Source of the DNA: Anthoceros angustus
Taxonomy: Eukaryota > Plantae > Anthocerotophyta
Length of the DNA: 64,000 nucleotides
Assembly (NCBI GenBank): GCA_010909165.1
Contig: MU008174.1
Coordinates: 186,001-250,000, forward strand
Direction of reading: 5' to 3'
Shown piece by piece: positions 6,466-63,414 of this stretch; the first letter of the stretch is position 1; every line of letters starts with the position of its first letter. The notes beneath the pieces are model-generated. The model was not told the DNA's origin and did no database searches. It saw nothing but the letters and a program-made list of their open reading frames with translations. The position numbers and the translations under genes are program-made.

Positions 6466-7689
6466 ATGCGAGACCTCGCCACGGCAGGAAGAGGCGCCCG
6501 CCACGGTTACTCCGGCGGGGTCGCGAAGAAGGTCATTTCAAGCACCGAGACACCGCGATCTCTTGCGCTCCGCAGTCCGGCTCTCTGGCGGTATCTCGTG
6601 GGACACTCGGACGTCTTCGTGCGCGGCTCACCGTTGAGGTCGGAGAAGCGAACGCGGCGAAGGAGGCTCAACGTGCCAGCAGTCTTGACAAGCGGCGACA
6701 GCAACCAAGGGAGAAGAAGGCGATGGCACCCAAAAAGCCAGCGGAAGTTTGGGAGCCATGGAACCTTGTGGAGCGCAACATTGTGACCCGGCGCTATCCG
6801 GACTTTGGGCTCGGCTCCGAGGCGGGGTGGTGCGAGTGGCATTTGGACGTGTTCCAAATGGTCCGACCTTGACAGTTCACTCAGGGAGTTTGCGGAAGAT
6901 CTGGCGGTCAACAAGGAGGTGCGGTCCAAGAACCTCGAGAGGACCCAAGGCGATGGACCTTGAGGTCGGGCGAGCAGCGAAGGCTCAACGTGCGGCCGGT
7001 CTTGACAAGCGGCGGCGGCAACCAAGGAGAAGGCGTGGCACCCAAAAACTCCAGCGGAAGTTTGGGAGCCATGGAACCTTGTGGGCGCAACATTGTGACC
7101 CGCGCTATCCGGACTTTGGGCTCGGCTCCGAGGCGGGGAATTGGTGCGGGAGTGGCATTTGGGCGTGTTCCAAATGGTGCGGACCAGATGTCACTCTGGT
7201 CGGGAGTTTGCGGAAGATCTTGTGGCGGTCAACAAGGAGGTGCGGTCAAGAACCTCGAGAGGACCCAAGGCGATGGACCTTGGAGGTCTGAAGGCGGCCT
7301 ACGCCCAAGGAGGAAGAGGGGAGTGGTGCCGAGCCTCAAGGCGAAGGGGAAAATAGGTCCGGCCCACAGCCGATGCTAAGGCACAGGGCGCGGACCACCA
7401 ACGGTTATTGATATCCGACTGTTGGACGGTCGAGTCGAGGCGGTGGCCGGATCATCGCTCCATCGGAACCTACTCACCAAGGTGGATCACCTTGGTGATA
7501 ATCTATTAGTGTTCACCGCAGCGTTGCGGCGGGGAAGAGGCGGGCGGGGAAGGATTATCTTCGCCCGGTTTGCAGAAGCTCAGCTCGGGAGGCGAAGCCC
7601 TCGCCATCGCATCCCCATGCACGATCCATGTATGGGGCATTTCAACTCCTCGGGAAGAGCAGGCGCTCGGGAAAGGGCTGGAGGCCCTC
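6466..7689 (+). CDS. Outer-LTR ORF, N-terminal conserved domain (frameshifted; ~320-bp internal duplication)
   Basis: Fragments MAPKKPAEVWEPWNLVERNIVTRRYPDFG, EPREDPRRWTLEV, TTNGY.ISDC.DGRVEAVAG, GRIIFARFAEAQLG..KPSP.HPH..MYGAFQLL; these are collinear with the inner LTR ORF domain. Confidence 0.55.
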
Positions 7690-8365
7690 TGTGGAGTGTG
7701 GATTCGTGTCCGAGGACGTGAGGTCCACATTCACCCCTCAATGTCGTTGTAGGCTTAGGATTCGCTCCCAAGGGAATGGTTTGTGCCAGGCGCTAACTTC
7801 TATCACTCGACCTTCACCTAAGTCAAGACTTGCACCTCCTCTTACCTATCTACTCAACCACTACTACCCCGACTTGTCCTACCACGGCTCTTATTCCACG
7901 ACCAAATCTCATTCCACGACCGCAAATCTCCACGACCGCGGGCTCTCACCGGTAGTTGCTTCGACCACCGAGGTGGGTCCACACCCAAACCCTAGCGACT
8001 TATTTCCGGCGCCGGCGCGGATCCACCGCAGGCGTCACGTGCGGATCCGGCTTTATTCACTCCACACTTCATGCACACACACACCGATTCCTAGGGGCTA
8101 AATTCCACAAATCCTCACGCTCCACACACACACAAAGGCGCCACACTCACACAACTTTACAAGGAACTGTTCCCCTTGACGCTTCCACCGGTGACACCGG
8201 TTTGGTTTCTTTTGGATTCACACAAATCTCCTTTGCTAGCCTCTCAATTAGTTCCCTTCTCAACCCCTCTCACACCTCGCGCATCGTGTTTAGTCACTCC
8301 TTCACCCAATCTTCTCCTCTCTCTCTCTCTCAACTCGCAGCTTCCAACCATCCACTCAACACTTC

Positions 8366-26637: not shown

Positions 26638-26653
26638 TCCCGCAGCGGCGCCA
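26637..26653 (-). other. Primer-binding site variant (repeated at 27285-27301; degenerate near 29110-29121)
   Basis: TGGCGCCGCTGCGGGAA, 3 nt from the LTR end. Confidence 0.8.
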
Positions 26654-35600: not shown

Positions 35601-36134
35601 TTCCTCCTCTGCGTCGCGCCTCGCGATGTCGGCGGGGTTGAGCTCCTTCCCCGTCGTTGCGCCTCGCGCCCTCCTGCGATCACGGTGCCCCGGACCCGGC
35701 TCCTCGACTTCGTCGCGCTCGCTCGCTCGCTCGCTCGCTCCGTTGTTTGAGCAGGATTACATCATTCCTAGGGTTAAGTTTCCCGGGTTCCCCTACTCTG
35801 TTCGACCTCTCGACCGCTTCCCACATCCCAATCCACAACCCACACTCATTCCCCATTTCTGGAGTCGACCCCAACTTATAGACTCTAATTATTCCAAACC
35901 CCCTATCTCACATATATAGACTTTTTAGGGAACATTAGTCCATGGGCCAAGGAACACCAAATTCCGGACCATTTATTTTCTAACCTAGGCAATAAAACAA
36001 AAAGAACTCCATAGGCCAAGGACATTTTTACTATGAATATCCCCAACTACCGTCAATCGACTTATTTTCACCACTCTCAAAAAAACAAAAATTCACTTGA
36101 GCACATTTTCAGGGTTTCGAGACTAGATCGTTTA
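26657..36134 (-). repeat. LTR-B (central shared LTR), heavily expanded by step-back duplications
   Basis: LTR left edge at 26657, again at 27305 and 29125; right edge at 35019, again near 36134. PBS on the left side, PPT on the right side. Confidence 0.8.
30640..34700 (-). CDS. LTR-encoded accessory ORF, LTR-B copy (internally duplicated)
   Basis: ORF-track 31412-31792, 32222-32404, 34059-34637; the middle block is repeated three times. Confidence 0.55.
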
Positions 36135-36165
36135 CTCCCTTCTCATTTGTTGGCGTCCCGCCAAC

Positions 36166-39100
36166 TTATGTATAATACTTCTTGACCCTCCACCCATTGA
36201 CTCGGGTGGTAGTGGAGGTCCACCTAACTCTTGCGGTTGTCTTGAGCCATTCTTGAAGACTTGAGAACTTTGTATGGCCCCATCCATCGAAGGTGGAGCT
36301 TGCCGGAAAGTGCATGTACCTATTGTCGTCTGTGAGGCCAAGTCACCGGAACTACCCACTCTTGCTTCCGCAATTGTCATGCCATATTTTCCGTTTCGCT
36401 TTGAATATCACGCATGACGCTCAACGCCTGTTCCCCTATCCTCTGTATGTTTAGCGAAGGCGACAGGCGTTCGGTGACTTTCCTCTCGCCATGCGGTTAG
36501 TTTCCGGATCGCGGTGGGAATTTCAAACTCAATAGGCATTACCGGAGAATGGCCGTAGGTGAGGTAGTACGGTGTTTGTTGCGTCGTTATTTTCTCTGCA
36601 GTCCTGTATGCCCAGAGCGCGGAGTGAAGCTTAAGATCCCAATCGTACGCATATTCCACCGTTAGTTTGTTGAGGATCCTGCACAGGAGCCCATTCGCCT
36701 TTTCCGTTAATCCATTTGCCTTGGGATTATAAGGAGTCGTTTTCCTGTGGCGAGCGTTGAAGTAGATCGTCATATGAGATATAACCGTTGTGAAATGTGA
36801 CCCTCATCGTGACAAGCTCCAAGGGACAACCATATCAGTGATAATCATTCATAGAGGAACACAGCCACTACATGGTGTCTACTGCGGTGCTTGGGCTTCC
36901 ACCATACGCGTGCAATAGTCGTGGCCACGAGGATGTATTGGTTTTGTCGCGTCCTCGTTTTGGTATGGGACCAACAAAGTCTATTCCCCATTTCTCGAAT
37001 GGCGCCGGGGCCAATATCGGAACCATTGGCCATTGAGTGGTTGCGACGGTTTCCCAACCCTCGGCGGGCATCGCAGCGTTTAACAAACTCCTAGCATCAC
37101 GATGCATGGTTTGCCACCGATACCCGTTTCAAGCACCTTCTTGCACGTGATATGTGCGCAAAATGTCCTCCGCTTCCCCTCGTGCATCTCGGACTTTCGG
37201 ATAACTGCTCCTTGTTACCCATAACTTTGTCCGCCCATCCGGTCCCGATTCTGATTGTCTTTGCGTCGTACAAGCGGACGCGAATAGTGCCTAGCGCTGC
37301 TGGGGTTTGAAAGATCCGATGGTATTTTCCCCGGTTCCAAGAATTCCATCATCTCCTCGTGAGTGGGCCTTGTGTATCCGTTCTCCCTTCTCATTTCTGC
37401 CGAGCCACCATTTACCCTCGCCTTATGGTTCGGCGTGCCGCCCCTCTAACTCATCATGACGAGCTTCATCGGAAAATCGTCGTTTTGGTCTGTGTAACCT
37501 CCTCTGTTTTCAGCCTCGAAATGTAATGCATTCACATGTTTACTCCCTCCTCTGGTCTCCACCGTGAGCGTGAATTCTTGCGGGAGTAGGATCCATCTTG
37601 CTATGCGTCCGGACAAGTCGGTTTGTTTACCGGTGTTTGAGGCGAAGTGGTCCACATGGAAGGCGAACTCGTGGGATAGCAAATAGTGGAAACTTGCGAA
37701 CCGAGTACACCATCCCAGCGCCTCCTCTCGGTGGTGGTATACTTCTTCTGCGTCGTGAGCTGCCTCCACATAATAGATTGGATAATCGTGCTTCTTGTCA
37801 TCCCTTTGGCTTAGAATGGTACCGATTGCATAGGCGGCGTCTACAAACACGTGGAACTTCTTGTTCGATCGGCCCCGTGGGTCTTGTGATCGGTGGTGCG
37901 AAGATCATTGAAGGCCTCCTCTCGTTTTTCGTCCATTCCCACTCCTGGTCCTTGCGAAGCAATTCTGTACAGCAGCGGAGCTGCCCTTCTGGAGAAATTC
38001 TTCACAAACCTTCGATAATAGCCTACCATCCCGAGGAATCCCTAAGCTCCTTGGTGGTAGGTGGCTTGAGGCGGTAATGATTTTGACCTTATCCGGTCGA
38101 CCTCTATCCCCAGCAATCGGTGCCCCAACAAAATACCCTCGGCATGCCGAAATAACACTTCTCGGGATGTAGACACAATTAGTCTGACACCGTTCGGACA
38201 TTTGCGAAGGTGGTTGAGGTGATCTTCGCTCCAAACACGCGAAGTCATCCAGAAGACCTCCATGAAGTCCCTAAGGTATTCCTTGAAAATCTTGACAACT
38301 CGCATGAAGGATCACGGTGCCCTGTTAATCCGAGCGCTCCGTTTGTAGGCATAGGTTCCCGATCAGTAGTGAAGGCATTGGTGGCCAATCACTCTCCACG
38401 AGATGTGGTTATACCGAATACCCATCCGAGAAGCAGGTAGACCATTCTCCACCGCAACTAAGTCCGATTATGTTGTCTATGAATGGAAGCGGGTAATGGT
38501 CTTTTTGGTCACCTTGTTTAACTTCCTCCAATCTGGCGGACCGTATCTTCCCTTACGCTTTTGGGAACCACCACAATTGGGGCTACCACTCCGATGTCAC
38601 AATAGGATATATGACGTCCGCAAGTAGAGCTCCAATTGTTCCTTTACCTTCGAATACTTTGGATTTAGCTTGTATTGCGGTATCCGGTGGCCGACACGGC
38701 TCGAGATCAATCTTGTGCTCCCCACTCCCTCGGTATACCCTTCATGTAACGTCAAAAGCAAAAACGTGGATAAATTCCATGCAATTTGTTTCATACCCCT
38801 TTCCAAGTGCATTCATCCTGTTGAAAACTTAAGGACCTTGCCGGGCAACACTTCCACATCCTTGACCTCATCCGTCTGCCACTCTCTCTCCACCGGCGGA
38901 TGTGATGCGAACCCTTCCTCCATGTCTTGGTTCTCCTTGGCGCATTCCCCATTCCGGAATAGGTCGTCGAGGTAAAGCGTGAGACACCCTCCTCGCACCC
39001 TCCAGTTTGTCGGATCGTCGCTCCCGGCTCACCTCTACTTCTTGTTCCTCGACCTCCGTCTGGTCTCCTCGATCCACCACGGGTTGTCAATTGTGACTCC

Positions 39101-41700
39101 ATAGCACCCTAATAGGTTGATGGAATGGGAATATCTCTCCGTGTCGTCCTCTTCATCGACCACGAAATATGTGCGAATGGGAATTTCTCCTTCTCATCCT
39201 CTCCCAGGTATCTTGAGGTGTATCCCTCCGTTTCGTGGGTGTCTCCCTCGTCGTATCTGCTCCAAGTCAAACATATCCTTCCTCCTTAATTTTGGGGTCC
39301 CAGTCCAGGTTTGAATCCCACTTCCTTTCTCGCCCCATTTGAAGGTGCAACGTGCCCCATACATCCATGTTCGTCAATGAGAACCTCATACCACAGCGCT
39401 TTTTGTTTAATGACCACGTAGTCCATGAGTGCGGAATGGTACCAATATGGGTTAGGACTCCGTCACTCCCCTACGGCGCCATTTTGGACATGTCCGCCAA
39501 CACCTTTGATGTATGTTCTATCGCAACCCAAGCTTCCGGTCTCCTCATCATGATGTTGACTCGACCGGAATCTAGCGGCACCTTCTTGATTACACATCCA
39601 TAATTTCTATCTGTAGCTCAGAGTCGTCCATCATGGCCACCATATTCACAGCAAGGGATTTCGGCCTTGGGGTGGAAAGGTTCCGTCTCTTCTTGGGTTG
39701 TGCCGCCTTCAATGCCCCAGTTCTTTGGCGGTCGCGGATTGTCCACGAGAAGTCGACGTTATCATGAACTTTTGGTCCATGATAGCGTCCAAATTGAAAG
39801 GAACACTGTTGTGCTTCTGTTTCTCCTTGCCAACCCCCCGTCATTTCAGCATGATGTCTTTGAGATGTTGCGGTCGTTGAAACATGGTAGGTGGCTTGAG
39901 GCGGTAATGATTTTGACCTTATCCGTCGACCTCTATCCCCAGCAATCGGTGCCCCAACAAAATACCCTCGGCATGCCGAAATAACATTTCTCGGGATGTA
40001 GACACAATTGGGTGTGACACCGTTCGGACATTTGCGAAGGTGGTTGAGGTGATCTTCGCTCAAACACGCAGAAGTCATCCGGAAGACCTCCATGAAGTCC
40101 CTAAGGTATTCCTTGAAAATCTTGACAATCGCATGAAGGATCACGGTGCCCTGTTAATCCGAGCGCTCCGTTTGTAGGCATAGGTTCCCGATCGTAGTGA
40201 AGGTTAGGCCAATCACTCTCCACGAGATGTGGTTATACCGAATACCCATCCGAGCAGGTAGACCATTCTCCGCAACTAAGTCCGATTATGTTGTCTATGA
40301 ATGGAAGCGGGTAATGGTCTTTTTGGTCACCTTGTTTAACTTCCTCCAATCTGACGTATCTTCCCTTACGCTTTTGGGAACCACCACAATTGGGGCTACC
40401 CACTCCGATGTCACAATAGGATATATGACGTCCGCACGCAAGTAGAGCTCCAATTGTTCCTTTACCTTCAGCGAATACTTTGGATTTAGCTTGTATTGCG
40501 GTATCCGGACTGGCACGGCACCCGGCTCGAGATCAATCTTGTGCTCCCCCCACTCCCTCGGTATACCCTTCATGTCTGTAACGTCAAAAGCAAAAACGTG
40601 GATAAATTCCGCCAACAGCTGTTTCATACCCCTTTCCAAGTCTGCATTCATCCTGTTCGAAAACTTAAGGACCTTGCCAGGCAACACTTCCACATCCTTG
40701 ACCTCATCCGTCTGTACCCACTCTCTCTCCACCGGCGCGGATGTGATGCAACCCTTCCTCCATGTCTTGGTTCTCCTTCGCGCATTCCCCATTCCGGAAT
40801 AGGTCGTCGAGGTAAACGTGAGACACCTCCTCGCACCCTCCGAGTTTGTCCGGATCGTCGCTCCCGGCTCGACCACCTCTACTTCTGTTCCTCGACCTCG
40901 TCCGGTCTCCTCGACCACCGGGTTGTCAATTGTGACTCCATAGCACCCTAATAGGTTGATGGAATGGGAATATCTCTCCGGTAATCGTCCTCTTCATCGA
41001 CCACGAAATATGTGCGAATGGGAATTTCTCCTTCTCATCCTCTCCCAGGTATCTTGAGAGGTGTATCCCTCCGTTTGTGGGTGTCTCCCTGCGTATCTCT
41101 GCTCCAAGTCAAACATATCCTTCCTCCTTAATTTTGGGGTCCCAGTCCAGGTTTGAATCCCACTTCCTTTCTCGCCCCATTTGAAGGTGCAACGTGCCCC
41201 ATACATCCATGTTCGTCAATGAGAACCTCATACCACAGCGCTTTTTGTTTAATGACCACGTAGTCCATGAGGTGCGGAATGGTACCAATATGGGTTAGGA
41301 CTCCGTCGGCTCCCCTACCGGCGCCATTTTGGACATGTCCGCCAACACCTTTGATGTATGTTCTATCTGCAACCCAAGCTTCCGGCGGTCTCCTCATCAT
41401 GATGTTGACTCGACCGGAATCTAGCGGCACCTTCTTGATTACACATCCGCAATTTCTATCTCAGAGCTCAGACCCCAGTCCATCATGGCCACCATATTCA
41501 CAAGGGATTTCGGCCTTGGGGTGGAAAGGTTCTCTCTTCTTGGGTTGTGCCGCCTTCAATGCCCCAGTTCTTTGGCGGTCTCCTCGACCACGAAATATGT
41601 GCGAATGGGAATATCTCTCCGTGTCGAGCGTTATCATGAACTTTTGGTCCATGATAGCGTCCGCCAAATTGAAAGGAACACTGTTGTGCTTCTGTTTCTC
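36166..41700 (-). CDS. pol: pol of internal unit 2 (RT-PR block duplicated at ~39883-41580; frameshifted)
   Basis: HRKTTPYNPKANGLTEKANGLLCRILNKLTVEYAYDWDLKLHSALWAYRTAEK..TPYYLTYG (INT); same RH, RT and PR motifs as unit 1. Confidence 0.9.
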
Positions 41701-44065
41701 CTTGCCAACCCCACCGTCATTTCGCGGTAGCTGTTTGAGATGTTGCGGTCGTTGAAACAGTGGCGGTAGGTGGGTGGGTCGTGGGTGGGTCGATGGCCAA
41801 AATACGGCCGTCTGTTCCGATTCTTGTCGGATCATATCCATAACCTTCCCGACATCGGGCGGAAGCGCCGACTCATCCTTTTTCCTCTTGCGGGTTTTCG
41901 CCCCATGTGTCGACTCGAGTCCCGCTGTCGTCCTCGTTTTGCACTTCACCCTCGAATCCAGCGGTCTCCTGCTAAGGGAGTTACACGTGATGCCATCCAA
42001 TCGCAACCTCGCGTTAAGTGTGGCGTTCGTGCCTTGCTCCCGTCCGGATTCGCATGCCCTTTTTTTGACTCCCATACCGAGTCCCTCGTCGGTTGTGGTT
42101 GGACTTCTCTTCCTTCCCTTTGATGAACGCCTCTTCCTCCTCACTTGCGGACGTTATGGAAGCTCCACTCCGTTCTTCTTCCTTTTTCCTCGCTCCCCTT
42201 CTTAGGGTGTCCGCCTTCCTCTCGCTCGTGTCCGAGCGACCATCGCGGGAGTTCCGTAATACCCACTATCCACATCCCCAACCCTTCCAGCTCCTCGGTG
42301 CAGCCTCGGAATCCTCCATCTGACCATGAGCGCATCTTGACTTGCATTGCGGCAGGCTTTCTTTGCGGGGTGGGTCGCCGTCGGAGGTTGAGCGATCCTC
42401 ACTGTTTTCGGTGTCTGGCGGAGGGGCGCCCTCGTGACTGATTGCTTGCGGTCCACACACCTTTCAAAATCACCATTCCTGGCGAGATGCGGAGGGGCAT
42501 CCAGCAAGATGCCCGAACCCTCGGCAATTGTAACATGGCACTCATTTGCGGGGTTCCTTGCCATCGATTGCGAATGCCCATGCACATGGGGTTTCGCAAA
42601 CTCGAGGTACAAAGTTTTGGTACCCAGAGATCGGTGTTGCCTCTTGAATTTGGTATGTATCTTCCAAGCACATCTCCTCATCCTCCTCCTCGTAGCCCAG
42701 TAGTTGCACTTTTGTTTGTGGACAGTTCGACCTCGAGTGCCCCTGCTGTCCACAAGTTGAGCAGAAGAGATTCGCCCGCGCTCCAGTAGCAACCCTTCTT
42801 CTATCATGGTCCTTGATGGCATTAAGATGGAGTTTCTCCAGTTTGACCATCATTTCCTCCATCTTGTTCCCTTGTTGCTCCACTTTTTTGGCTGCTGTTT
42901 CCACCTCTCTTCTCACACTCCGCGTCCTTTCGTGCATATAGCAGCTCCTTCCCTTTTGCACGTCGTCTTGTTTCCCAGTCATTTTTTCCCTTCTTCCTTC
43001 TATCCCTTCGGTTGCGCTCACCTTCTGACGAATTCTCCTCCGAATCCTCGCTGGTCTCCTCTTCCGTGGAGCTACCCGAGGAGTCAGTTGAAGAGCTATC
43101 CTCCTCCGCGGAACTGTCATCGGAGGACGAATAGTACTTCTTCTTCTTTTGTATTTCTTTTTGTCCTTCCGTGCGCCCTTGTTCGAGTTCTTCTTCTCTT
43201 CCGCGTTGGACTCCTCATAGTTCGGGCGACTTTAATCGATCCAAATCTTTCTCACTGAGGCGCGTGCCTTCCCATCTCCGCCCAATCCTCTTGCAAACCG
43301 GTGAATGGCCATTAGCTCGAGTGCGGACCGGCCCGATCCGTGGGTGGAACCTTTCCACATAAGCTGCGTGTCTCCTTCTTCCCTCTCCAGTCCCTCGAGT
43401 TTGGACAGACATATCCTTCCACATCGACCCCTCGAACCTTTCACAAAAGCTCTCTTCAAGGCCCCAAAGTAGGCGGGGTGTGGCGGAAGCTATGTACTCC
43501 CGCTTGTACCACTTGGCCGCTCCGCGTAAGACTCCATAAAGCAATGGGCACGATCGCATCCTCACGGTTGTGGCGTCAAGCGCTCGACAAACTCGTCGGG
43601 ATCCTCATGGCCCTTCTTTTCTCCATACAACGGGTAAGATTGCTTAGTAGTAACGAGCAGATCGCCATAACTACCGGGTAGTACTTTCAGCAGCTGCGGT
43701 AGTTGGCCACTACGTGCGGTGACCTCTACATTCACAGTTTGGACTGGCGGATCTAGGCAATGGGCGAGATCAAAAGACAAGGTGGGATCGGTACGGCCCC
43801 TTATGCATCGAGAGTTGGGAATCGAATCCGTTAAGATCCGATCCCTAGTTCCGAGTTGACTCCTGCCCCCTTCCTCGTCCGCAAGTGTGATCTCCGCCGT
43901 GCTCTCCTCGTAACTCTCTGCAATCTTTCCATGCTTGGCGTTGCCGTCTTGCGAGCGTTTCCCCAGTCGGATCCGAATCGCTTGTCTCCACGAGGCATCC
44001 ATCAATCTAGTAATGCTAGACTCTCGTAAGCTAGGGTTAGTCCTTCCTCGTCCTTGTGATTCCAT
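41701..44065 (-). CDS. gag: gag of internal unit 2 with two CCHC zinc knuckles (frameshifted)
   Basis: MESQGRGRTNPSLRESSITRLMDAS.., SYPLYGEKKGHEDPDEFVER, CSTCGQQGHSRSNC (~42722-42763) and CYNCRGFGHLA-GC (~42480-42535). The lower boundary is approximate. Confidence 0.85.
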
Positions 44066-44082
44066 TCCCGGCAACGGCGCCA
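44065..44082 (-). other. Primer-binding site, tRNA-Asp
   Basis: TGGCGCCGTTGCCGGGAA; 17/18 complementary to the plant tRNA-Asp(GTC) 3' end as recalled (TCCCCGGCAACGGCGCCA). Confidence 0.88.
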
Positions 44083-45029
44083 AAATGTGGAGTGTGGATT
44101 CGTGTCCGGGGACACCGTGAGGTCCACATTCACCCTCAATGTCGTTGTAGGCTTAGGATTCGCTCCCAAGGGAATGGTTTGTGCCGAGGCGCTAACTTCT
44201 ATCGCTCGACCTTCACCTAAGTCAAGACTTACTTGCTATTACTCCTCTTACCTATCTACTCAACCACTACTACCCCCGACTTGTCTAGCTACCACACTCT
44301 TATTCCACGACCGCAAATCTCATTCCACGGCTGGGGCTCTCACCGGGTAGTTGCTTGACCACCGAGGTGGGTCCCACACCAAACCCTAGCGACTTATTTC
44401 CGGCGCCGGCGGATCCACCGCAGGCGTCCACGTGCGGATCCGGCTTTGTGCACTCCACACTTCATGCACACACACACCATTCCTAGGGACCTAAATTCCA
44501 CAAATCCTCACGCTCCACACACACACAAAGGCGCCACACTCACACAACTTTACAAGGGAACTGTTCCCCTTGCACTTCCACCAGACCGGTTTGGTTTCTT
44601 TTGGATTCACACAATCTCCGCTAGCCTCTCAATTAGTTCCCTTCTCAACCCTCTCACACCTCGCATCGCGTCTGATGTTTAGTCACTCCTTCACCCAATC
44701 TTCTCCCTCTCTCTCTCTCCCTCAATTCGCCCAGCTTCCAACCATCCACTCAACACTTCTCTCAATTGAACACAACTAGCGGGACAAGTGTGAAGGAAGA
44801 AGAACCCCAGGCGTCACGGCGTTGAGCAAGCTCCGGACCCGCCCGCCAATCCCTTGGTTTCCTCCTCCTTTGTCGGCAAGATTGCTTTATCACCCCTCCT
44901 CCCAGTGCGGAGCAAGCTCTCGACCACCCCTAGGGCGTCTCGCACACCGCCTCATCAATCGGACGTCTCCAACCAGCCACAGGCGTGGGGATCTCAACCA
45001 GAGTTATCGGCGTGAGGGACCTAATTCGC

Positions 45030-45040
45030 CCCTCTTATAC
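45030..45040 (-). promoter_or_regulatory. Probable main LTR TATA box (GTATAAGAGGG), downstream of the LTR ORF
   Basis: Present in every inner LTR copy and identical to outer element 55439-55449. AATAAA lies ~360 nt from the LTR 3' end in LTR-B copies (27664-27669, 29505-29510). Confidence 0.55.
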
Positions 45041-45149
45041 ATCGGTGGGGCACCACCGGATTTTAGGTCCTAAGATGGCTATCACGAAGGCGCCCACAAT
45101 TCGGGCGATCCTAGGTCGATCGACATCCTAACCAAATTATCTTTAGGTT

Positions 45150-47643
45150 GCTACCACCTCACCTCGCTGTCTGCGCCCTACCTCGACTTGGCCGTCGGCC
45201 TCGTCCTCCATTGCTGCCGCCACGAGCTCTCCGCCGCGCCCGGCTGGACGGGTTCTCCCACACTACTTCCACCTCACATCCTTCTGGGCGTCCGAATTTG
45301 AGGTGTACCACCTGGGCTTCCGCATCTTCCGGCCTATTCTTGAGGATTATTCGGTTCCTCGTCCACCCAAGCTGGACCTCCTCCTCGCTCAACTCCTCCA
45401 AAGTCGCCTCCGCGCATAATAGGAGCCAACCCCACACCGGCGCGGTGGTAGAAGTATGCACTTGGTCCTCACTTGCGATGGTAGGCCACGATCCCTCCTA
45501 TTTCCACACGCACATGGGCGGTGAGGTTAAGCACGCGTTCTCCATTCACATATAGACCGAGCACATAAGTTTCCTCATCCATGTGCCGTAATATAATAGG
45601 ACCCCTATGCGGTGAGGTGCTTACCCCTCCTCCGTAGGCTACACACAGTTGCTGGCCTATGTCCTCGCGGCGCCACGTCGCATCTGTCGCCCGCCCGCTT
45701 GGGTTGGTTGCGCCAATGTCGGTGGCGGTTTCGACTACGGTAGTGGACTCCACGGCCGTCGTTCGTTCGACAACCGCGGTAGGTGAGGTTTCGGCTACCT
45801 CGGTTCTTTGCTTCCTTCCGCTCGGTAGGCCTTCCTACTCGATCGTGGTCCTGCTACCCGCTTCCCTTCCCTTCCCTTTGTCTTTTCGGCCCGCCACGTG
45901 CCTCATCCGCTCCGCTTATATCGCTCCGCTAGCTTATGGGCCTTTTCCACGAGGCCGCTTCACGCTCTGGGCTCGCAACAACTCCCCATCTCTGGTTCGT
46001 CTGTGGGCATCCTTAATTTGAGCCATGAGTGCTTCCTGGCTCGTCATGGCTTGCAACTTCTCACAGGCCTGCACAAATCTTCTTGAATCTTGGCCCTTAT
46101 TTCCTCTAGGTTCCGCTTGTCTTCCTCCGATTGCTTGCGCTTGGCCTCCTCTTATCAAACGCCTTCACCACTTCCTCCGTCGCCCGAGCCGGTGAGAGCT
46201 AAAGCCGCTTGATCCAACAAATGCTTGGGCCGGATCGCCGTGGTCGGCTCACCAAGTCCACTTGTTGTGGCGGCCCGCGCCATCCCTCTCGAGAACTTTC
46301 CTCCCAGCAGTGCGCACCCTCACCAATTCGGTTGCATCCACCTCTGTTGCGGTGGAGTCCCTTGAAAATCTCTTCCCATCTTTGAGGAGGGTCCGCCTCG
46401 AGGTCAGCCCTAAACCCTCGGAGTTGATTCATCATCGCATCCGGTCGAAAATTGTCCTCGGATCGCGCCTCCTCTTACGCCACCTCCAAGCTGGTTTGGC
46501 TTTCATTTTCTAGCTGGCCGTTTTCGACACAGTGGCCGCGCATCCGCCTTCACCTTTTTCGATGCCGCCTTCACCCCGGTCTTCCTCCTTTTCTTTGGTG
46601 GGAATTTCCTTCTCCTCCTCCTTGCCGCCACCGACTCCCAGCTATCCGATTTTTCCTCCTTGGGCTCCTCCGCCTTCCACTTCACCTCCCTAACCGGCTT
46701 CCACATGTGGAGGGAGGCTACAATCTCCACCTCTGGCAGACAGTTAGCGTAAACATAAAGATGGACCAGAAATGGTGAGATTAGAGAGGGCCGAGGGGCA
46801 GAGGAAATCAGGTTCAACCTCTCTTCACACAGCTTGTCGAAGAGAATTCGCCCCCAATCGATCTTCGCCCCCTTGACCACTTCATGAAGGAGCGGCAAGT
46901 GGTCGGACAAATAATCCACTTCTTGTCTGCGAAACATAGGAGCCACTGGCGGACCCATCAAGCTGTTGCCAAATCCCTCGTCAACGGCCGTTGGGTTCGA
47001 ATTCGCCCGCTTTAACGGGCGGTGCTGCTGCCGTGCTTCTTTTCTGGGCGGCTCCATCACCAACCGCCCGCCTCCTCCTTGCCCATACACCCTTCTAACC
47101 ACTCCGGTCCCAATCCTGCGGCCGCTCTAAATCCCCTTTGTTCATCCTTGGTGTGCGCACACTCTGCACCAGTCCAGTTCATGTAATTCCACCGCTCTTC
47201 CATGAAACCCGGCTCCTTCACAGCTCCCAGCTCGAACTTTCCAATGATCCATGTTCGGCCATTGGGCAAGCACAATTCGGTGGTGACCTTGGGCGCCATC
47301 CCTCTCACGGTCTTCACGGTCTCGCGCCACAAACCAACGCCACCTCGCTGCGAATTTCACGGTCGGTCTCGAGTTCCTACCTCCTCGGCAAGGCGCGCTG
47401 TCATCGCGCCTTCCTCCTCTGCGTCGCGCCTCGCGATGTCGGCGGGGTTGAGCTCCTTCCCGCCGTCGTTGCGCCTCGCGCCTCCTGCGATCACGGTGCC
47501 CCGGACCGGCTCCTCGACCGTCGCGCTCCGCTCGCTCCGTCCGGCCGCCGTTGCGCTCCGTTGTTTGAGCGGGATTACATCATTCCTAGGGTTAAGTTTC
47601 CCGGGTTCCCCTACTCTGTTAAACCTCTCGACCGCTTCCACAT
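45150..47643 (-). CDS. LTR-encoded accessory ORF (~830 codons, reconstructed across indels), LTR-C copy
   Basis: Collinear fragments: WEAVERSNRVGEPGKLNPRNDVILLKQRS; GMAPKVTTEIVLAQWPNMDHWKV..PGFMEERWNYMNW; KGAKIDWGRILFDKLCEERLNLIS..LVHLYVYANC; coiled coil EEIRAKIQEDLCRAQEKLQAMTSQQEALMAQIKD; C-terminal GPIILRHMDEETYVPGLYVNGERVLNLT..EATLEELSEEEVQLGW. Confidence 0.65.
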
Positions 47644-47731
47644 CCCAATCCACAACCCCACACTCATTCGGCTACCGGCGTCAGTCGACCCCAACTTATA
47701 GACTCTAATTATTCCAAACCCCCTATCTCAC

Positions 47732-47738
47732 ATATATA
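47732..47738 (-). promoter_or_regulatory. Second TATA box (TATATAT) near the LTR 5' end, upstream of the LTR ORF
   Basis: AAAAAGTCTATATATGTGAG, ~230 nt inside the LTR and ~90 nt before the ORF start; conserved in all LTR copies. Confidence 0.5.
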
Positions 47739-48739
47739 GACTTTTTAGGGAACATTCCGAGTCCATGGGCCAAGGAACACCAAATTCGGACCATTTATTT
47801 TCTAACCTAGGCAATAAAACAAAAGAACTCCATAGGCCAAGGACATTTTACTATGAATATCCCCAACTACCGTCAATCGACTTATTTTCACACCACTCTC
47901 GACCAAAAAACAAAAATTCACTTCAGAGCACATTTTAACAGGGGTTTCCGAGACTAGATCGTTTACACCCTCCCGGAGTGGAGGCGGGCAAGGCGTCGGA
48001 GGAGGAGGCGGTCGACAAACCAAGCGGACTCGGGAGGAGGAGGCGGGAGGGATTCGGACTCCATACGTCAGAGCGGACCCCCTCTCACGGTCTTCACGGT
48101 CTCGCGCCACAAACCAACGCCACCTCGCTGCGAATTTCACGGAGGTCGGTCTCGAGTTCCTACCTCCTCGGCAAGGCGCCATCCCTCTCACGGTCTCGCG
48201 CCTTCCTCCTCTGCGTCGCGCCTCGCGATGTCGGCGGGGTTGAGCTCCTTCCCGCGTTGCGCCTCGCGCCCTCCTGCGATCACGGTGCCCCGGACCGGCT
48301 CCTCGACCGTCGCCGGTTGGTGCTCCGTTGTTTGAGCGGGATTACATCATTCCTAGGGTTAAGTTTCCCGGGTTCCCCTACTCCTGTTCGACCTCTCGAC
48401 CGCTTTCCCACATCCCAATCCACAACCCCACACTCATTCATTCACGCCGCTTGGGTCGACCCCAACTTATAGACTCTAATTATTCCAAACCCCCTATCTC
48501 ACATATATAGACTTTTTAGGGAACATTCCGAGTCCATGGGCCAAGGAACACCAAATTCCGGACCATTTATTTTCTAACCTAGGCAATAAAACAAAAAGAA
48601 CTCCATAGGCCAAGGACATTTTACTATGAATATCCCCAACTCAATCGACTTATTTTCACACCACTCACTCGACCAAAAAACAAAAATTCACTTGAGGCAC
48701 ATTTTAACGGGGTTTCGAGACTAGATCGTTTACACCCTC

Positions 48740-55449: not shown

Positions 55450-57080
55450 CTAAGGCATACAGATAAATCATCTTTCTCTTGGTGTTGATGCGCGTTCTTG
55501 CGGACCTTTGTGTGTCTTCTTGCTAACGTGAGTCTGAGTCAGGCGAGGCACGGCTCGGGAGATTGATCAAGGTCACGGTGGCGGACCTAACGCGTTGTGG
55601 TGTGTGCGGGGAAGGGTGGCGGTGACCCGTGCTCGTCGGAGCAGCGGAGGAAGGCCGGACCCGAGGAAGGTTGGGTCAGGCCGGACCCGGAGGAACTCGG
55701 GAGGCGTCTGAGCCGGACGGAGGCCGGAGCAGCGGAGCAGCGGAGGAGGTCGGGGCATGTAACCAGCGTCTTTTCTAAGGCGAGAGTGTAGCGTGAGGGG
55801 AGAGGAAAGGCGGATGTGAGGGACGGATGTGAGCGATCTTGACAGGTCCTTAAGCGTTTAGCCATCTGGGCTGTCACGGTGAAACGTTGTGAGTAGTTAG
55901 GAGTATGTGTGTGTTGAGCGAGCAGGCGCTAAGGGCGGTAGGAATCACAAGCAGTGGAGCCTATCATTCCCTTAGGGCGGACTTCTTCCTACAACGACCT
56001 TGCAGGATTGTGGCGCGGCCATCGTGAGTCGCGCCACAGCCATGACAAGAATGGAGGAGCAATGGAAGATGATGAAATGAGAATGGCTCAAAAGGAAATA
56101 GCTCAATGCTTTGTCTTTGGTAGGTGTCCACATATATACCTTTTGATTCACTCTTATCTCGATATCTCAAGTGTTAAAAATCGAAGGAAATGTTCACTAA
56201 TGACATTAGAAATATCATATTAAACTTGTGTGAGAAGAGTTTTCAAGGTTCTTGCAATTACTTATTTAATGCAACTAAAAGATATTACTATGCAAAATAT
56301 ATCCTAGTGAAAGCGAACATTAAGAAGTACTAGAGGTAGTACGCTGGGCAATCTACCATGGCCATGACAAGAGGAACAGGACAAGTACAAGTCACTTATT
56401 GATCAAATGATCAAGCGCCAAGTCGGGCCCTACCTTGTTTTCCGGTCCACCTCCACTCTCGGATGCATGCGCGATTAGCCTCCTCTACATGTATTTCGTG
56501 CGGTACCTTCACAGCTTCGGCAATATAACAAAGGCTTCCGGTATGAGCTCCCCTTATGTCATAGTACACTCTTCCATTCGTTGAGCTTTCCAGCAGCTCT
56601 TATGCGTTCGACACAATATATGCGGTCCTCACCTACATCTCGTAAGTCATTGAAGCCAATCAGCCTTTTACAGCCCACTCAACCAAGATGCTTTGGGGAT
56701 CTCCTGTTGCAATTCTCGGCTGCTGAGAGAGGCTCACACCATCTCTTGTAAGAGAGCCTCAGCTTTTCTCAAGGCTGCATTTGGTGCTTAGTTCCAGTTT
56801 AAAATTGTGTGGGGAAGGAGATCTCGAGCGATCCTTTGGTGCACAATGCGCGAGAGAAAAATCCATTGATAGGCGGGGATCCCACGGCCAGCTGTGAGTA
56901 CACTGACACGGAACATAAACGAAAGAGACGATTGCCACAGATGCATTCGCAGCTATTTATTACTTATAATGATAATGATGGAATGTTTACACAAATCATT
57001 AACCTTAGCATTAAAAATAATGCAAGGATAAAATCAATTGAAATATACCTCCATCATAAAAGAAGAAACTTCGCTAGTGT

Positions 57081-57371
57081 CTAGCAATGCGAATTCGGAG
57101 GAAATGGACAATGCTCGATGTAGTTCAATATAATGGGCGGTGCAATGCAGTCCTCCATCGCCTTGCACATGCAACTCACTCCACCGCCACAACAACGTTG
57201 CAACAATTCCGAGGGGACGGATGGCCACTTTCCATCGCTTCCCTCACATTGGGAATCTATGTATGCTTCATCGCAACTTGTCACAACTCTTGCTCTTGCT
57301 CCAAGGACCAGACAAGAGTCACCATCAAGAAAGTCAACTTCAGCGTATCATGGACATCTTCACATGACCAT
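57081..57371 (-). CDS. nsLTP-like 8CM protein, copy 3 (frameshifted as given)
   Basis: ORF-track fragment ..SCDEAYIDSQC..GVSCMCKAMED..IILNYIEHCPFPPNSHC*; signal-peptide part in another frame. Confidence 0.72.
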
Positions 57372-58428
57372 GACAAGAATGGAGGAGCAATGGAAGATGA
57401 TGAAATGAGAATGGCAGCTCAAAAGGAAATAGCTCAATGCTTTGTCTTTGGTAGGTGTCCACATATATACCTTTTGATTCACTCTTATCTCGATATCTCA
57501 AGTGTTAAAAATCAAGGAAATGTTCACTAATGACATTAGAAATATCATATTAAACTTGTGTGAGAAGAGTTTTCAAGGTTCTTGCAATTACTTATTTAAT
57601 GCAACTAAAAGATATTACTATGCAAAATATATCCTAGTGAAATAGCGAACATTAAGAAGTACTAGAGGTAGTACACGCTGGGCAATCTACCATGGCCATG
57701 ACAAGAGGAACAGGACAAGTACAAGTCACTTATTGATCAAATGATCAAGCGCAAGTCGGGCCCTACCTTGTTTTCCAGTCCACCTCCACTCGGATGCATG
57801 CGCGATTAGCCTCCTCTACATGTATTTCGTGCAAGACCTTCACAGCTTCCGGCAATATAACAAAGGCTTCCAGCTGTATGAGCTCCCCTTATGTCATAGT
57901 ACACTCTTCCATTCGCTGAGCTTTCCAGCAGCTCTTATGCGTTCCTGACACAATATGTGCGGTCCTCACCTACATCTCGTAAGTCATTCAAGCCAATCAG
58001 CCTTTTTACAGCCCACTCAACCAAGATGCTTTGGGGATCTCCTGTTGCAATTCCGCTCGGCTTTGTCTTTGAGAGAGGCTCCGCACACCATCTGTCTTGT
58101 AAGAGAGCCTCAGCTTTTCTCAAGGCATTTGGTGCTTAGTTCCAGTTTAAAATTGTGTGGGAAGGAGATCTCGAGCGATCCTTTGGTGCACAATGCGCGA
58201 GAAAAAATCCATTGATAGAGCGGGGATCCCACCGCCACCGTGAGTACACGCGACACGGAACATAAACGAAAGAGACGATTGCCACCGAATGCATTCGCAG
58301 CTATTTATTACTTATAATGATAATGATGGAATGTTTACACAAATCATTAACCTTAGCATTAAAAATAATGCAAGGATAAAATCAATTGAAATATACCTCC
58401 ATCATAAAAGAAGAAACTTCGCTAGTGT

Positions 58429-58724
58429 CTAGCAATGCGAATTCGGAGGAAATGGACAATGCTCGATGTAGTTCAATATAATGGGCGGTGCAATACCCGA
58501 GTCCTCCATCGCCTTGCACATGCAACTCACTCCACCGCCACAACAACGTTGCAACAATTCCGAGGGGACGGATGGCCACTTTCCATCGCTTCCCTCACAT
58601 TGGGAATCTATGTATGCTTCATCGCATCTTGTCACAACTCTTGCTCTTGCTCCAAGGACCAGACAAGAGTCACCATCAAGAAAGTCAACTTCAGGCGTAT
58701 CATGGACATCTTCACAACAGCCAT
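58429..58724 (-). CDS. nsLTP-like 8CM protein, copy 4 (frameshifted as given)
   Basis: MAVVKMSMIRLKLTFLMVTLV in one frame and LVLGARARVVTRCDEAYIDSQC..CMCKAMEDSGIAPPIILNYIEHCPFPPNSHC* in another. Confidence 0.75.
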
Positions 58725-59765
58725 GACAAGAATGGAGGAGCAATGGAAGATGATGAAATGAGAATGGCAGCTCAAAAGGAAATAGCTCAATGCTTTGTAC
58801 TGGTAGTTGTCCACATATATGCCTTTTGATTCACTCTTATCTCGATATCTCAAGTGTTAAAAATCGAAGGGAAATGTTCACTAATGACATTAGAAATATC
58901 ATATTAAACTTGTATGAGAAGAGTTTTCAAGGTTCTTGCAATTACTTATTTAATGCAACTAAAAGATATTACTATGCAAAATATATCCTAGTGAAGCCAA
59001 GCGAACATTAAGAAGTACTAGAGGTAGTACACGCTGGGCAATCTACCATGGCCATGACAAGAGGAGCAGGACAAGTACAAGTCACTTATTGATCAAATGA
59101 TCAAGCGCAAGTCGGGCCCTACCTTGTTTTCCAGTCCACCTCCACTCTCGGATGCATGCGCGATTAGCCTCCTCTACATGTATTTCTGCGGTACCTTCAC
59201 AGCTTCCGGCAATATAACAAAGGCTTCCAGTGTATGAGCTCCCCTTATGTCATAGTACACTCTTCCATTCGTTGAGCTTTCCAGCTCTTATGCTCGTTCG
59301 ACACAATATGTGCGGTCCTCACCTACATCTCGTAAGTCATTGAGCCAATCACCTTTTTACAGCCCACTCAACCAAGATGCTTTGGGGATCTCCTGTTCTC
59401 GCTCGGTTTGGCCGGAGAGAGGCTCCGCACACCATCCTCTTGTAAGAGAGCCTCGGCTTTTCTCAAGGCATTTGGTGCTTAGTTCAGCTTTAAAATTGTG
59501 TGGGGAAGGAGATCTCGGCGATCCTTTGGTGCACAATGCGAGAGAAAAATCCATTGATAGAGCGGGGATCCCACCGCCATGTGAGTACACGCACGACACG
59601 GAACATAAACGAAAGAGACGATTGCCACCGAATGCATTCGCAGCTATTTATTACTTATAATGATAATGATGGAATGTTTACACAAATCATTAACCTTAGC
59701 ATTAAAAACAATGCAAGGATAAAATCAATTGAAATATACCTCCATCATAAAAAGAAGAAACTTCG

Positions 59766-60053
59766 CTAGTGTCTAGCAATGCAATTCGGAGGAAATGGAC
59801 AATGCTCGATGTAGTTCAATATAATGGGCGGTGCAATACCCGAGTCCTCCATCGCCTTGCACATGCAACTCACTCCAGCTGCCACAACAACGTTGCAACA
59901 ATTCCGAGGGGACGGATGGCCACTTTCCATCGCTTCCTCACATTGGGAATCTATGTATGCTTCATCGCAACTTGTCACAACTCTTGCTCTTGCTCCAAGG
60001 ACCAGCACAAGAGTCACCATCAAGAAAGTCAACTTCAGGCGTATCATGGACAT
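59766..60053 (-). CDS. nsLTP-like 8CM protein, copy 5 (open 95-aa frame from Met6)
   Basis: MSMIRLKLTFLMVTLVLVLGARA (signal-peptide-like) + C-X8-C-X13-CC-X9-CxC-X19-C-X5-C. This is the canonical 8CM of the nsLTP/prolamin superfamily with type-II-like spacing. Confidence 0.85.
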   Translation of the reverse strand: MSMIRLKLTFLMVTLVLVLGARARVVTSCDEAYIDSQCEEAMESGHPSPRNCCNVVVAAGVSCMCKAMEDSGIAPPIILNYIEHCPFPPNCIARH

Positions 60054-60157
60054 TTCACAACAGCCATGACAAGAATGGAGGAGCAATGGAAGATGATGAA
60101 ATGAGAATGGCAGCTCAAAAGGAAATAGCTCAATGCTTTGTGCTTGTAGGTGTCCAC

Positions 60158-60164
60158 ATATATA
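60158..60164 (-). promoter_or_regulatory. TATA box of nsLTP-like gene (equivalent in every unit)
   Basis: TATATAT on the minus strand ~90 nt upstream of the ATG; AATAAA occurs ~130 nt after the stop in each unit. Confidence 0.6.
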
Positions 60165-60198
60165 CCTTTTGATCCACTCTTTATCTCGATATCTCGGG

Positions 60199-60869: not shown

Positions 60870-62033
60870 ATGGAAAACACAATGCGGGAAGAAGCTGAGC
60901 AAGAACCGGGAGACTCGGGATGGGACCAGTCCAGAACTCCAGCAGCAGCAGCAGCAGCGGGAGCCGCAGCTGGAGCAGGAGGAGCAGCAGCAGCAGCCAT
61001 GACCCAGGTCGAGGGGAAGGCCTACGCTGTGGTCCCCGTGGTGGTCGGCTACGCGCTCTGCTCCAGCCTGCTGGCCGTGATTAACAAGTACGCCATCACC
61101 TTCTTCCCCTTCCCCAGCCTCCTGACGGCTCTCCAGTACGTGAGCAGCGTGGTGGGCGTGTTGGGTCTGGGGAGGCTGGGCCTCCTGCACCACGACGCCT
61201 TCCGGTGGGAAACGGCGAGGCAATTTCTCCCAGCCGCCGTCGTCTTCTACCTCGCTATCTTCACCAACACCAACCTGCTGAAGCACGCCAATGTGGACAC
61301 ATTCATCGTCTTCCGGTCCTCCACTCCCCTGCTAGTGGCCCTGGCGGACACCCTGTTCCGGAAGCAGGCACTTCCGTCGAGAGGAACCTTCGTGGCGCTG
61401 CTTGTCATTCTGGGGGCTGTGGGCTATGTGCTCACCGACTCTGCTTTCACAGTAACTGCCTATGCCTGGGCTGTGGCGTACCTGGTGGTGATCACCGCTG
61501 AGATGGTGTACATCAAGCACATGGTGTCCAACCTGGGGCTCAACACCTGGGGCTTCGTGTACTACAACAACCTCCTGTCCCTGCTGCTGTCGCCCATCTT
61601 CGCCATAGCCACTGGGGAGATGTGGGACGTCCGGGGCGCTGCCCAGCCTGGGTTTCAGATGGTGCTGTCCGTGGCTTTGTCCTGTCTCTTCGGCCTGGCT
61701 ATCAGCTTCTTCGGGTTCGCTGCCAGGAGGGCACTTTCCGCCACTGCATTCACTGTCACCGGGGTGGTGAACAAGTTCCTGACGGTGATCATCAATGTGC
61801 TGATCTGGGACAAGCACGCCAGCAATGTGGGTCTCGCGTACCTGCTGCTCACGCTTGTCGGGGGTGTGATGTACCAGCAGTCCACGAGCTCGCCTGCTCG
61901 GGTTGCTCCTCCTCCTGCTAAGAATGTTGATGACCAGGAGCTGGGGCTTGGGCAGGGCTTCGTGAAGATGGAGGAGGAGAAGCTGCCGCTGCTGTCGATT
62001 AAGCCCAAGTCCAGGTTTCTAGGTGGGACGTAG
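60870..62033 (+). CDS. GONST4: Golgi nucleotide-sugar transporter, GONST4/GFT1 (GDP-fucose transporter)-like; intronless, 387 aa
   Basis: GYALCSSLLAVINK, FYLAIFTNTNLLKHANVDTFIVFRS, EMVYIKHMV, YNNLLSL, SATAFTVTGVVNKFLTV.INVLIWDKHA closely match the plant GONST3/4 clade, nearer GONST4/GFT1 as recalled; Ala/Gly-rich N-terminal extension. Confidence 0.93.
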   Translation: MENTMREEAEQEPGDSGWDQSRTPAAAAAAGAAAGAGGAAAAAMTQVEGKAYAVVPVVVGYALCSSLLAVINKYAITFFPFPSLLTALQYVSSVVGVLGLGRLGLLHHDAFRWETARQFLPAAVVFYLAIFTNTNLLKHANVDTFIVFRSSTPLLVALADTLFRKQALPSRGTFVALLVILGAVGYVLTDSAFTVTAYAWAVAYLVVITAEMVYIKHMVSNLGLNTWGFVYYNNLLSLLLSPIFAIATGEMWDVRGAAQPGFQMVLSVALSCLFGLAISFFGFAARRALSATAFTVTGVVNKFLTVIINVLIWDKHASNVGLAYLLLTLVGGVMYQQSTSSPARVAPPPAKNVDDQELGLGQGFVKMEEEKLPLLSIKPKSRFLGGT

Positions 62034-62291: not shown

Positions 62292-63414
62292 TCATAACTT
62301 TGGCACAAAGACCTTGCGGAATGTGAGGTTGATCCGCAATCCAGCTGATTTTGTACGTTTTGGCACAGAATGGTCCCAATCCCTCTGCATGTTGCCTTTC
62401 ATAACAAGGAGGGAGCCATGCTTGAGGATGAAAGAATACTGTTCCTTCGGGGTAGCACAATGTACAGTGGTAGTGAGAGGTGAGCAGCTTGGGGCAGAAT
62501 GCCCGGAGTGTAGCCGCCGCATCTTCGTTGCAGGCTGGTTCATGTTGTGGTCCCCCTCGTGTTTGCCAGGTGAGTGATGAACAGGCTCTTCTCGTGCTCC
62601 CGCCACATCTGCACGTCCGCACTCCCCCTTGTCAGAAGGCTTGGTCATAGAACGTGGGACTCTGTTGGATTCCGCCTTCCTTCTGGGTCTTTGGACCTGC
62701 ATACTCCTGCCATTCCTCTCCTTCTCCTTTTGCAACTTGTAACCCTTCTTCATTCTCACAAAAAACTCCCTTTCAGCACCCAAGCTGACAGACGCAATGA
62801 CGGGGGATGGCCCATACAGTTTCTCGTTATCGCTGTGCCAGGCAGCGTAGTCTGACCCATTTGCATACCGGTTGATCAGAACACTGTTGAACTCCGTGTC
62901 TGGCACAGCCTGTTGAACCTGACAACAAACACCCAGAACCCCTGAGCAGGACTGCTTCGTGGACAACAGCACACAACAAGATGTCGAGGCTCACCGAATG
63001 CAGAATGGTTTTCAGAACCGGGAATTCGTCCCAATGATACGCAACAGGCTGATGCCCGCTGTATTTCAAGTTCGGCAGATTTCTGTCAGCCACGTAACAT
63101 GATTCTCTTGGCTGCAAAAATAACCTCTTATCAGTACACTAAGAATCCGCACGCAAGCAACCCTGAGCTCCAGTAATCCTCACCCTGGCGCTCCACAACA
63201 AAACACAAAGGACACGATTGCACGCAAGAACCTGAATACAGGGCCGACCATAAATGAACAGGGTTGGCCGAGTCCATGGCATCTCTTTGTCCAAGACCTG
63301 AAGCCAAAGGTCAGCCTCCGCTCTGGTGAAAAATCGTGGATACCACTCAATCTCCGATTCATCTCCCAAATCCACATGCACCACACTCCTGACCGGCTCG
63401 CCCTGTGATTCCAT
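62292..63414 (-). CDS. ALKBH2: AlkB homolog 2, 2OG-Fe(II) DNA dealkylase; exons 63414-63232, 63111-62995, 62918-62292 (308 aa)
   Basis: GT-AG introns keep the frame; motifs PWTRPT..YGR..QPRESCYVA, LKYSG, FNSVLINRY.NGSDY.AWHSDNEKLYG, ASVSLGAER, LKHGSLLVM.G..QRDW.HSVPKR, RINLTFR. An extra upstream exon cannot be excluded. Confidence 0.92.

Follow-up and report, generated by a model that had tools for sequence, protein, structure and literature searches.

A conserved U5 box complementary to the 5' end of tRNA-Asp in Ty3/gypsy retrotransposons: a possible second contact for the primer

The U5 region of tRNA-Asp-primed Ty3/gypsy elements harbors a short box, CTACAACGAC, that is real and conserved and is probably related to the primer. 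The most likely role of this putative cis-element, proposed tentatively from sequence comparison, is that of a second contact for the primer tRNA outside the PBS. Both families that carry the box in the window (the whole 64-kb stretch of Anthoceros angustus DNA analyzed here) lie in one big nested retrotransposon insertion. Self-comparison reveals that this insertion splits a ~1.34-kb satellite array, whose unit copies are 92-95% identical to one another, into two parts (3774-6070 and 56041-60195). The nested elements are as follows.

6071-56038, forward strand: outer LTR-like element, sitting in the 1.34-kb satellite array and broken by the inner complex
7690-48734, reverse strand: inner Ty3/gypsy complex (LTR-internal-LTR-internal-LTR), lying inside the outer element

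The outer insertion begins with TGTTGTGG at 6071 and ends with CGCGCCACA at 56038. No similarity exists between the left part of this insertion (6071-7689) and its right part, and at the insertion point the satellite copies differ too much for an exact target-site duplication to be read. Searches within the 64-kb window found for the outer element neither a second LTR nor a PBS from which its primer tRNA could be read. The inner complex is bordered by a single 5-bp target-site duplication, CCCTC (7685-7689 and 48735-48739). The inner LTR starts with TGTAAACG, ends with CTCCACA and measures ~4.65 kb in the copy at 44086-48734; its copies align as direct repeats with TG..CA ends, as befits an LTR retrotransposon, and a purine-rich tract adjoins the copy at about 12987. 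The middle inner LTR (about 26657-36140) is used by both units of the tandem array. The internal parts contain fragmented gag ORFs with a zinc knuckle, an RT-like ORF (40295-40918, reverse strand) whose relatives contain RVT_1, an RT_RNaseH region (37446-37850, reverse strand) and integrase-like ORFs assigned by eye (36408-37107, reverse strand). The inner element is thus a Ty3/gypsy LTR retrotransposon with the pol order RT, RNase H, integrase, all of its ORFs being fragmented.

The sequence CCTACAACGAC has six exact matches in the window against 0.03 expected, a number reached by none of 100 shuffles. All six start where an earlier note on this DNA had placed them, one on the forward strand and five on the reverse. 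The U5 features of the outer element, of the inner 5' LTR and of the remaining inner LTR copies are listed in that order.

55965-55973, forward strand: second conserved U5 block of the outer element, CATTCCCTT, common to the inner family
55988-55998, forward strand: outer U5 box, of which the final 10 nt (CTACAACGAC) exactly complement nt 1-10 of tRNA-Asp
56009-56038, forward strand: outer terminal hairpin (TGTGGCGCG / CGCGCCACA), ending at the terminal CA of the LTR
44168-44176, reverse strand: inner copy of the CATTCCCTT block, containing CCATTCCC
44159-44167, reverse strand: U5 block GGGAGCGAA, which a post hoc comparison places a single mismatch away from a full complement to nt 54-62 in the T loop of tRNA-Asp
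44141-44151, reverse strand: U5 box of the inner 5' LTR, with the 10-mer at 44141-44150
44086-44128, reverse strand: inner nested terminal hairpin (TGTGGA..GTGTCC/GGACAC..TCCACA)
44067-44082, reverse strand: inner PBS TGGCGCCGTTGCCGGG, exactly complementary to the 16 nt at the 3' end of plant tRNA-Asp
29180-29190, reverse strand: box of the array's middle LTR, whose PBS has suffered an internal deletion
27360-27370, reverse strand: box of a partial LTR copy whose PBS (27286-27301) is degenerate
26712-26722, reverse strand: box of another partial LTR copy, again with a degenerate PBS (26638-26653)
7743-7753, reverse strand: box in the 3'-most inner LTR copy, with no PBS after it, as this copy abuts the outer LTR

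The box ends 40 nt before the end of the outer LTR (56038) and 55 nt before that of the inner LTR (44086), exactly as claimed, and the two terminal hairpins described in the earlier note fold as it stated, each closing at the terminal CA. The outer hairpin is the MFE structure, with 56009-56017 paired to 56030-56038 (z = -2.3). In the inner element the LTR end is followed by TTT and then directly by the exact 16-nt tRNA-Asp PBS. Across the elements, 40-58 nt separate the box from the LTR end or the PBS downstream, and one or more hairpins lie between. The outer stem of the inner MFE fold is formed by CCATTCCC in U5 (44170-44177) and GGGAATGG in the leader (44059-44066), both on the reverse strand. 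This predicted stem, whose leader strand comes directly after the PBS, encloses the box, the hairpin and the PBS, and the stability of the whole inner U5-PBS fold does not exceed that of shuffled sequences (z = -0.8).

The outer and inner families are related. Sequence neighboring the box had been thought otherwise unrelated, a view that fails here: an alignment of the two U5 regions extends ~60 nt beyond the box on its upstream side, and their longest identical runs are the 11-nt box itself and then the 9-nt CATTCCCTT. Because the regions are alignable and share this second 9-nt block, the two families are homologous. Since the five inner matches are copies of one LTR, the window offers two related families, so that the claim of two LTR families sharing a motif holds for their number but not for their independence. 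Recurrences of the box therefore represent conservation in one deep lineage rather than convergence or independent inventions. An alignment of nine U5 regions likewise reveals deep homology, with the box as the best-kept U5 segment.

The tRNA-Asp sequence given in the earlier note is backed by the literature. A forward primer for plant tRNA-Asp begins with GTCGTTGTAGTATAGTGG (PMC6521008), a 15-mer present in 16 papers, for the most part plant small-RNA studies among those listed, and the tRNA-Asp 3' fragment GTTCGATCCCCGGCAACGGCGCCA is listed for tobacco and pitaya (PMC8871844, PMC7510087). The two ends form an acceptor stem with a U2-G71 wobble and thus fit one tRNA. ARAGORN detects no tRNA gene in the window or in six scanned loci. 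The box complements nt 1-10 of this tRNA at 10/10 positions, all Watson-Crick (-14.7 kcal/mol). Its 10-nt length equals the tail that is single-stranded after opening of the acceptor stem plus the first base of the D stem. The companion claim, that the PBS pairs with the 3' end of the same tRNA, is exact for the inner element; for the outer element the window contains no PBS.

Variation within the species leaves the box intact. Of the public sequencing runs, one small DNA run (X1) and no RNA run contain this stretch, and contigs, not reads, of X1 were mapped onto positions 43800-44600. Their depth peaks at 44124-44177, reaching 5949-7282 against about 2400-2500 on both sides, so the U5 core is common to more copies or families than the remaining LTR. 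No variant at or above 5% falls inside the 10-mer at 44141-44150 in these contigs, from which rare variants are lost. The flanking base at 44151 is polymorphic, and its majority form (2227/3528) pairs with U11 of the tRNA to give an 11-nt match.

The box recurs in other organisms. Metagenome contigs were scanned for CAACGAC followed, after a gap of 32-62 nt, by TGGCGCCGTTGCCG, with the three bases upstream left free. At least 120 loci match, and 115 of the 120 listed are GC-rich bacterial chance matches, none of which (0/115) has CTA upstream of CAACGAC. Five loci among the matches listed have less than 45% GC, and CTA is present in three of these five against an expectation of 1/64 (P about 4e-5); Fisher's test of low-GC against other loci among the matches listed returns a P of the same order. 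All three clear LTR-spacer-PBS junctions among the matches listed (L128, L133 and L135) carry the unselected CTA. The full 10-mer stands 52 nt (L128), 47 nt (L133) and 54 nt (L135) before the PBS, across spacers that are unlike one another. It is preceded by A in L128, for an 11-nt match, by TA in L133, for a 12-nt match that reaches A12 of the tRNA, and by G in L135, which makes a G-U wobble with its partner, U11 of the tRNA. The L133 junction, TATCA+ATT, is of the type reported for Brassicaceae ATHILA and is followed 440 nt downstream by a Retrotrans_gag ORF; the box is therefore present in an ATHILA-type contig. A one-base variant of the box, CTACCAACGAC, occurs in L098. In phage contigs, used as a negative control, the 10-mer is upstream of none of 155 PBS-like matches, themselves due to chance. 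A leader resembling the tRNA 3' end (GGCAACG, GCAATTGGCG, GCGCTA) comes just after the PBS in L128 (4671-4950, reverse strand), L135 (800-1079) and L181 (11673-11830), and by eye these leaders can fold back onto the PBS.

In some tRNA-Asp elements the box is missing or decayed. L181, found by RT similarity and not by its box, has two decayed tRNA-Asp-type junctions, one (L181a) with a 7/10 box 36 nt upstream and the other (L181b) with CAACGA only. L095 matched the scan through a leader CAACGAC after a duplicated PBS, and its U5 has no box. In all three tRNA-Asp-type junctions not selected on a U5 box (L181a, L181b and L095), the box is thus degraded or absent. The best RT relatives of the inner element are ~50% identical fragments, and longer relatives use other PBSs. 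Most matches in the RT-similarity sample are short fragments, the long loci being L181 and three with other PBSs (L058, L180 and L182). The Asp box is absent from these three relatives. No convincing box for their own primer tRNA was found in the U5 of L058 and L182. L180 (L180:8380-8470; assembly GCA_000143415.2, probably Selaginella) has the PBS TGGTGCACTGCCCGGGA, and GCAGTG in its U5, with 48 nt left to the end of the LTR, is a 6/7 acceptor-strand match, to the strand that would pair with the 5' end of its own tRNA (chance about 0.12).

If the box is a second primer contact, annealing of the 3' 16 nt of tRNA-Asp to the PBS would open the acceptor and T stems, and the freed 5' tail of the tRNA (nt 1-9, with G10 at the start of the D stem) would pair with the U5 box. 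The acceptor stem would thus be swapped for two intermolecular helices, which might stabilize or activate the initiation complex. This model presumes a host tRNA-Asp with the 5' end GTCGTTGTAG and expects its nt 1-11 to read GTCGTTGTAGT. Pairing itself, and any effect on reverse transcription, we infer from the observed complementarity, conservation and preference for the tRNA over the PBS. The original proposal that the freed 5' strand pairs with U5 gains from the 10/10 match, from the retention of CTA and from that preference, but energy calculations and RNAcofold give it no preference. The duplex energy is ordinary, being equaled by shuffled 18-mers in 10-13% of trials on a GC-rich 200-nt target. 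Cofolding with tRNA-Asp, which the earlier note had proposed as a check, leaves the U5 box unused, and scrambling the box leaves the binding energy unchanged (RNAcofold, with nt 19-52 of the tRNA model provisional). The cofold puts the tRNA 5' end on a leader site, ACAAGGAC (44050-44057, reverse strand), that is 7/8 like the box. As a rival tRNA site this leader sequence was rejected, since the family's other three copies do not have it.

A broader version of the second-contact model, possible and somewhat more speculative, would make the box one part of a multipartite primer site that extends from this genome to Brassicaceae ATHILA. The site would consist of the PBS, the U5 box for the 5'-terminal 10-12 nt of the tRNA and possibly a block for its T loop; a four-strand exchange of the acceptor stem would take place there, which would explain why sites exploitable by 5' tRNA fragments are kept. 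The candidate T-loop block is a second U5 block, GGGAGCGAA, GGGATCGAC or GGGATCAGA, about 8-20 nt upstream of the box (44159-44167, reverse strand; L181:11673-11808; L095:2710-2845). The block has 1-2 mismatches to the complement of tRNA-Asp T-loop nt 54-62. Over nine U5 regions the mismatch total is below that of all 2000 shuffles, a comparison made post hoc on related sequences.

The strongest competitor, though an unlikely one, holds that the box is a conserved U5 signal of another kind, serving integrase or att-proximal recognition, packaging, dimerization, polyadenylation or translation control, and that its match to the tRNA is coincidental. The box does form part of a longer stretch of conserved U5 sequence, together with CATTCCCTT and the GGGAGCGAA-like block, and energy modelling shows no preference for tRNA pairing at the box. 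However, the probability of meeting an exact 10-12-nt complement that begins at nt 1 of the tRNA is about 1e-4 per 100 nt, and invariance stops where complementarity stops, the major variant lengthening the match. Moreover, the box occurs with tRNA-Asp PBSs and not in the three relatives examined that have other PBSs.

Less probable still is that the box mimics the 3' acceptor strand of the tRNA and pairs with the PBS inside the element RNA, masking or presenting it as retroviral U5-IR or U5-leader stems do. Because the complement of an acceptor 5' strand resembles the acceptor 3' strand, any such box can also pair with the PBS, and CAACGAC is indeed complementary to GCCGTTG of the PBS at 6/7 positions; the tRNA-3'-like leaders of L128, L135 and L181a also fold onto the PBS by eye. 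Yet this pairing, at about -8.4 kcal/mol, contains an A-C mismatch where a G would suit both partners, so that the A of the box opposite U2 of the U2-G71 wobble favors the tRNA over the PBS. The CTA extension is likewise conserved although it is unable to pair with the PBS and pairs only with U8-A9-G10 of the tRNA. In MFE folds of eight elements the box is never paired with the PBS, which counts against the U5-PBS hairpin that had been suggested as an alternative. In its complementarity the box tracks the 5' end of the tRNA, not the PBS.

It is similarly improbable, by a slight further step, that the box is a functionless relic, namely an ancient read-through antisense copy of the primer tRNA that was left in U5 after a downstream duplicate PBS took over. 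Tandem PBS units do exist in L095, where two of tRNA-Asp type lie ~100 nt apart (2547-2826, reverse strand), each with TTTCAACGACA, and thus CAACGAC, 20 nt after it; PBS regions can therefore duplicate, and duplication could shift old leader sequence into U5. The order of U5 is also that of an antisense tRNA, with a PBS-like TAGCGCC stretch, a block resembling the T-loop complement and the 5'-end complement. Against a relic, its derivation requires a 13-nt insertion and a ~38-nt deletion, and a functionless box would not stay exact where spacers have diverged beyond alignment. Such an origin would in any case be compatible with a present function as a primer contact.

Very unlikely is a reading of the box as a target of host 5' tRNA fragments (tRF-5) that cleave or repress the element RNA. 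Arabidopsis 19-nt tRF-5s direct the cleavage of transcripts that are mostly Gypsy (PMC5605234), and 5' fragments of tRNA-Asp are common in the plant small-RNA literature. Like the box, the tRF-5 sites of Gypsy elements can pair with tRNA 5' ends, and the conservation of these sites extends in part to rice and maize (Martinez et al. 2017, PMC5605234). Those sites are complementary over nearly the full 19 nt and are read as silencing targets, whereas the box matches 10-12 contiguous nt, with the bases beyond mostly mismatched, and holds a fixed U5 position by a cognate PBS. A match of 10-12 of 19 nt makes a poor tRF-5 site, too short for the plant miRNA-like cleavage described in PMC5605234, and the box was rejected as a tRF-5 target site on that count. 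An element would moreover keep a silencing site only if it were needed for replication, which returns to the second-contact model; a replication role, if true, would explain why complementarity to tRNA 5' fragments persists. Chance inflated by copies of one LTR is hardly credible as a source of the match, for although five of the six window matches are such copies and a complement to any tRNA part could have been noticed (about 0.6% per family), elements of other organisms carry the box beside spacers that are unrelated, and the match is lengthened by flanking bases.

The HIV-1 primer activation signal (PAS) is a U5 motif that precedes the PBS, beyond an intervening hairpin, and pairs with the TpsiC arm of the primer tRNA. 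Like the PAS and the RSV U5-TpsiC interaction, the box is a short U5 motif from which the PBS is tens of nucleotides distant, with a hairpin between, and it matches a part of the tRNA that annealing would free. As expected of a PAS-type signal, the candidate motif lies outside the PBS and is complementary to this segment at 10/10 positions, and over 11-12 nt in some families. It differs from the HIV-1 and RSV motifs, which pair with the TpsiC arm, in matching the 5' acceptor strand and nt 8-10 of tRNA-Asp, and in belonging to a plant retrotransposon. We know of no retroelement that uses the 5' acceptor strand of its primer; the elements described here, if the pairing is real, would to our knowledge be the first.

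The segments of the extended PBS of Ty1 pair with the T and D arms of its primer. Ty1, with this extended PBS, and Ty3, with a bipartite PBS, are likewise LTR retrotransposons in which tRNA beyond the 3' end pairs with element RNA (PMC5371799). In Ty1 the two PBS segments are close together, whereas the box is upstream in U5 and matches the tRNA 5' end; in Ty3 the other half of the PBS is found about 4.8 kb away in U3, and not in U5. Contacts of the tRNA outside the PBS are established for HIV-1, FIV, RSV, Ty1 and Ty3 (PMC5371799), and an extra contact is also known for Gypsy. A candidate drawn from a different priming mode, Tf1-type self-priming, was rejected: the box pairs with the PBS at 6/7 positions with a mismatch, and the PBS is an exact tRNA-Asp complement.

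Judged by their PBS, the tRNA-Asp-primed elements with the box are ATHILA-like. The inner element combines TGGCGCCGTTGCC with a short AT-rich spacer, and the same PBS with an AT-rich 3-6-nt spacer is described for ATHILA in passages of a recent paper on its junctions and PBS (bioRxiv 10.64898/2026.03.20.713144). The same passages give TATCA as the LTR end in Brassicaceae ATHILA, whereas the window LTRs end in CCACA. No U5 box was found in the searched passages of that paper (bioRxiv 10.64898/2026.03.20.713144), and a full-text search of the literature turned up no account of a primer activation signal in plant elements. A second docking site for the primer is likewise not described for these elements in the literature searched. 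The start of reverse transcription in plant LTR retrotransposons is modelled almost wholly on yeast and retroviruses, as a 2025 review agrees (PMC12786077). ATHILA-type elements shape centromeres, according to passages of the ATHILA paper (bioRxiv 10.64898/2026.03.20.713144). A conserved second primer contact, if true, would supply a testable rule of primer choice and a new sequence seed with which to annotate the ATHILA-like lineage. It would also explain why these elements cannot dispense with a site to which abundant 5' tRNA fragments are able to pair.

Other features of the window concern its repeats and their surroundings. Nearly all segments of 7690-55268, LTRs and internal parts alike, are present in two to four local tandem copies of 84-95% identity, with periods of about 650-1850 bp, which might be real duplication or an effect of assembly. 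Beside the repeats lie two apparently intronless host ORFs, one for a triose-phosphate-transporter family protein (60870-62033, forward strand; 387 aa) and the other for a 2OG-Fe(II) oxygenase (62292-62972, reverse strand; 226 aa).
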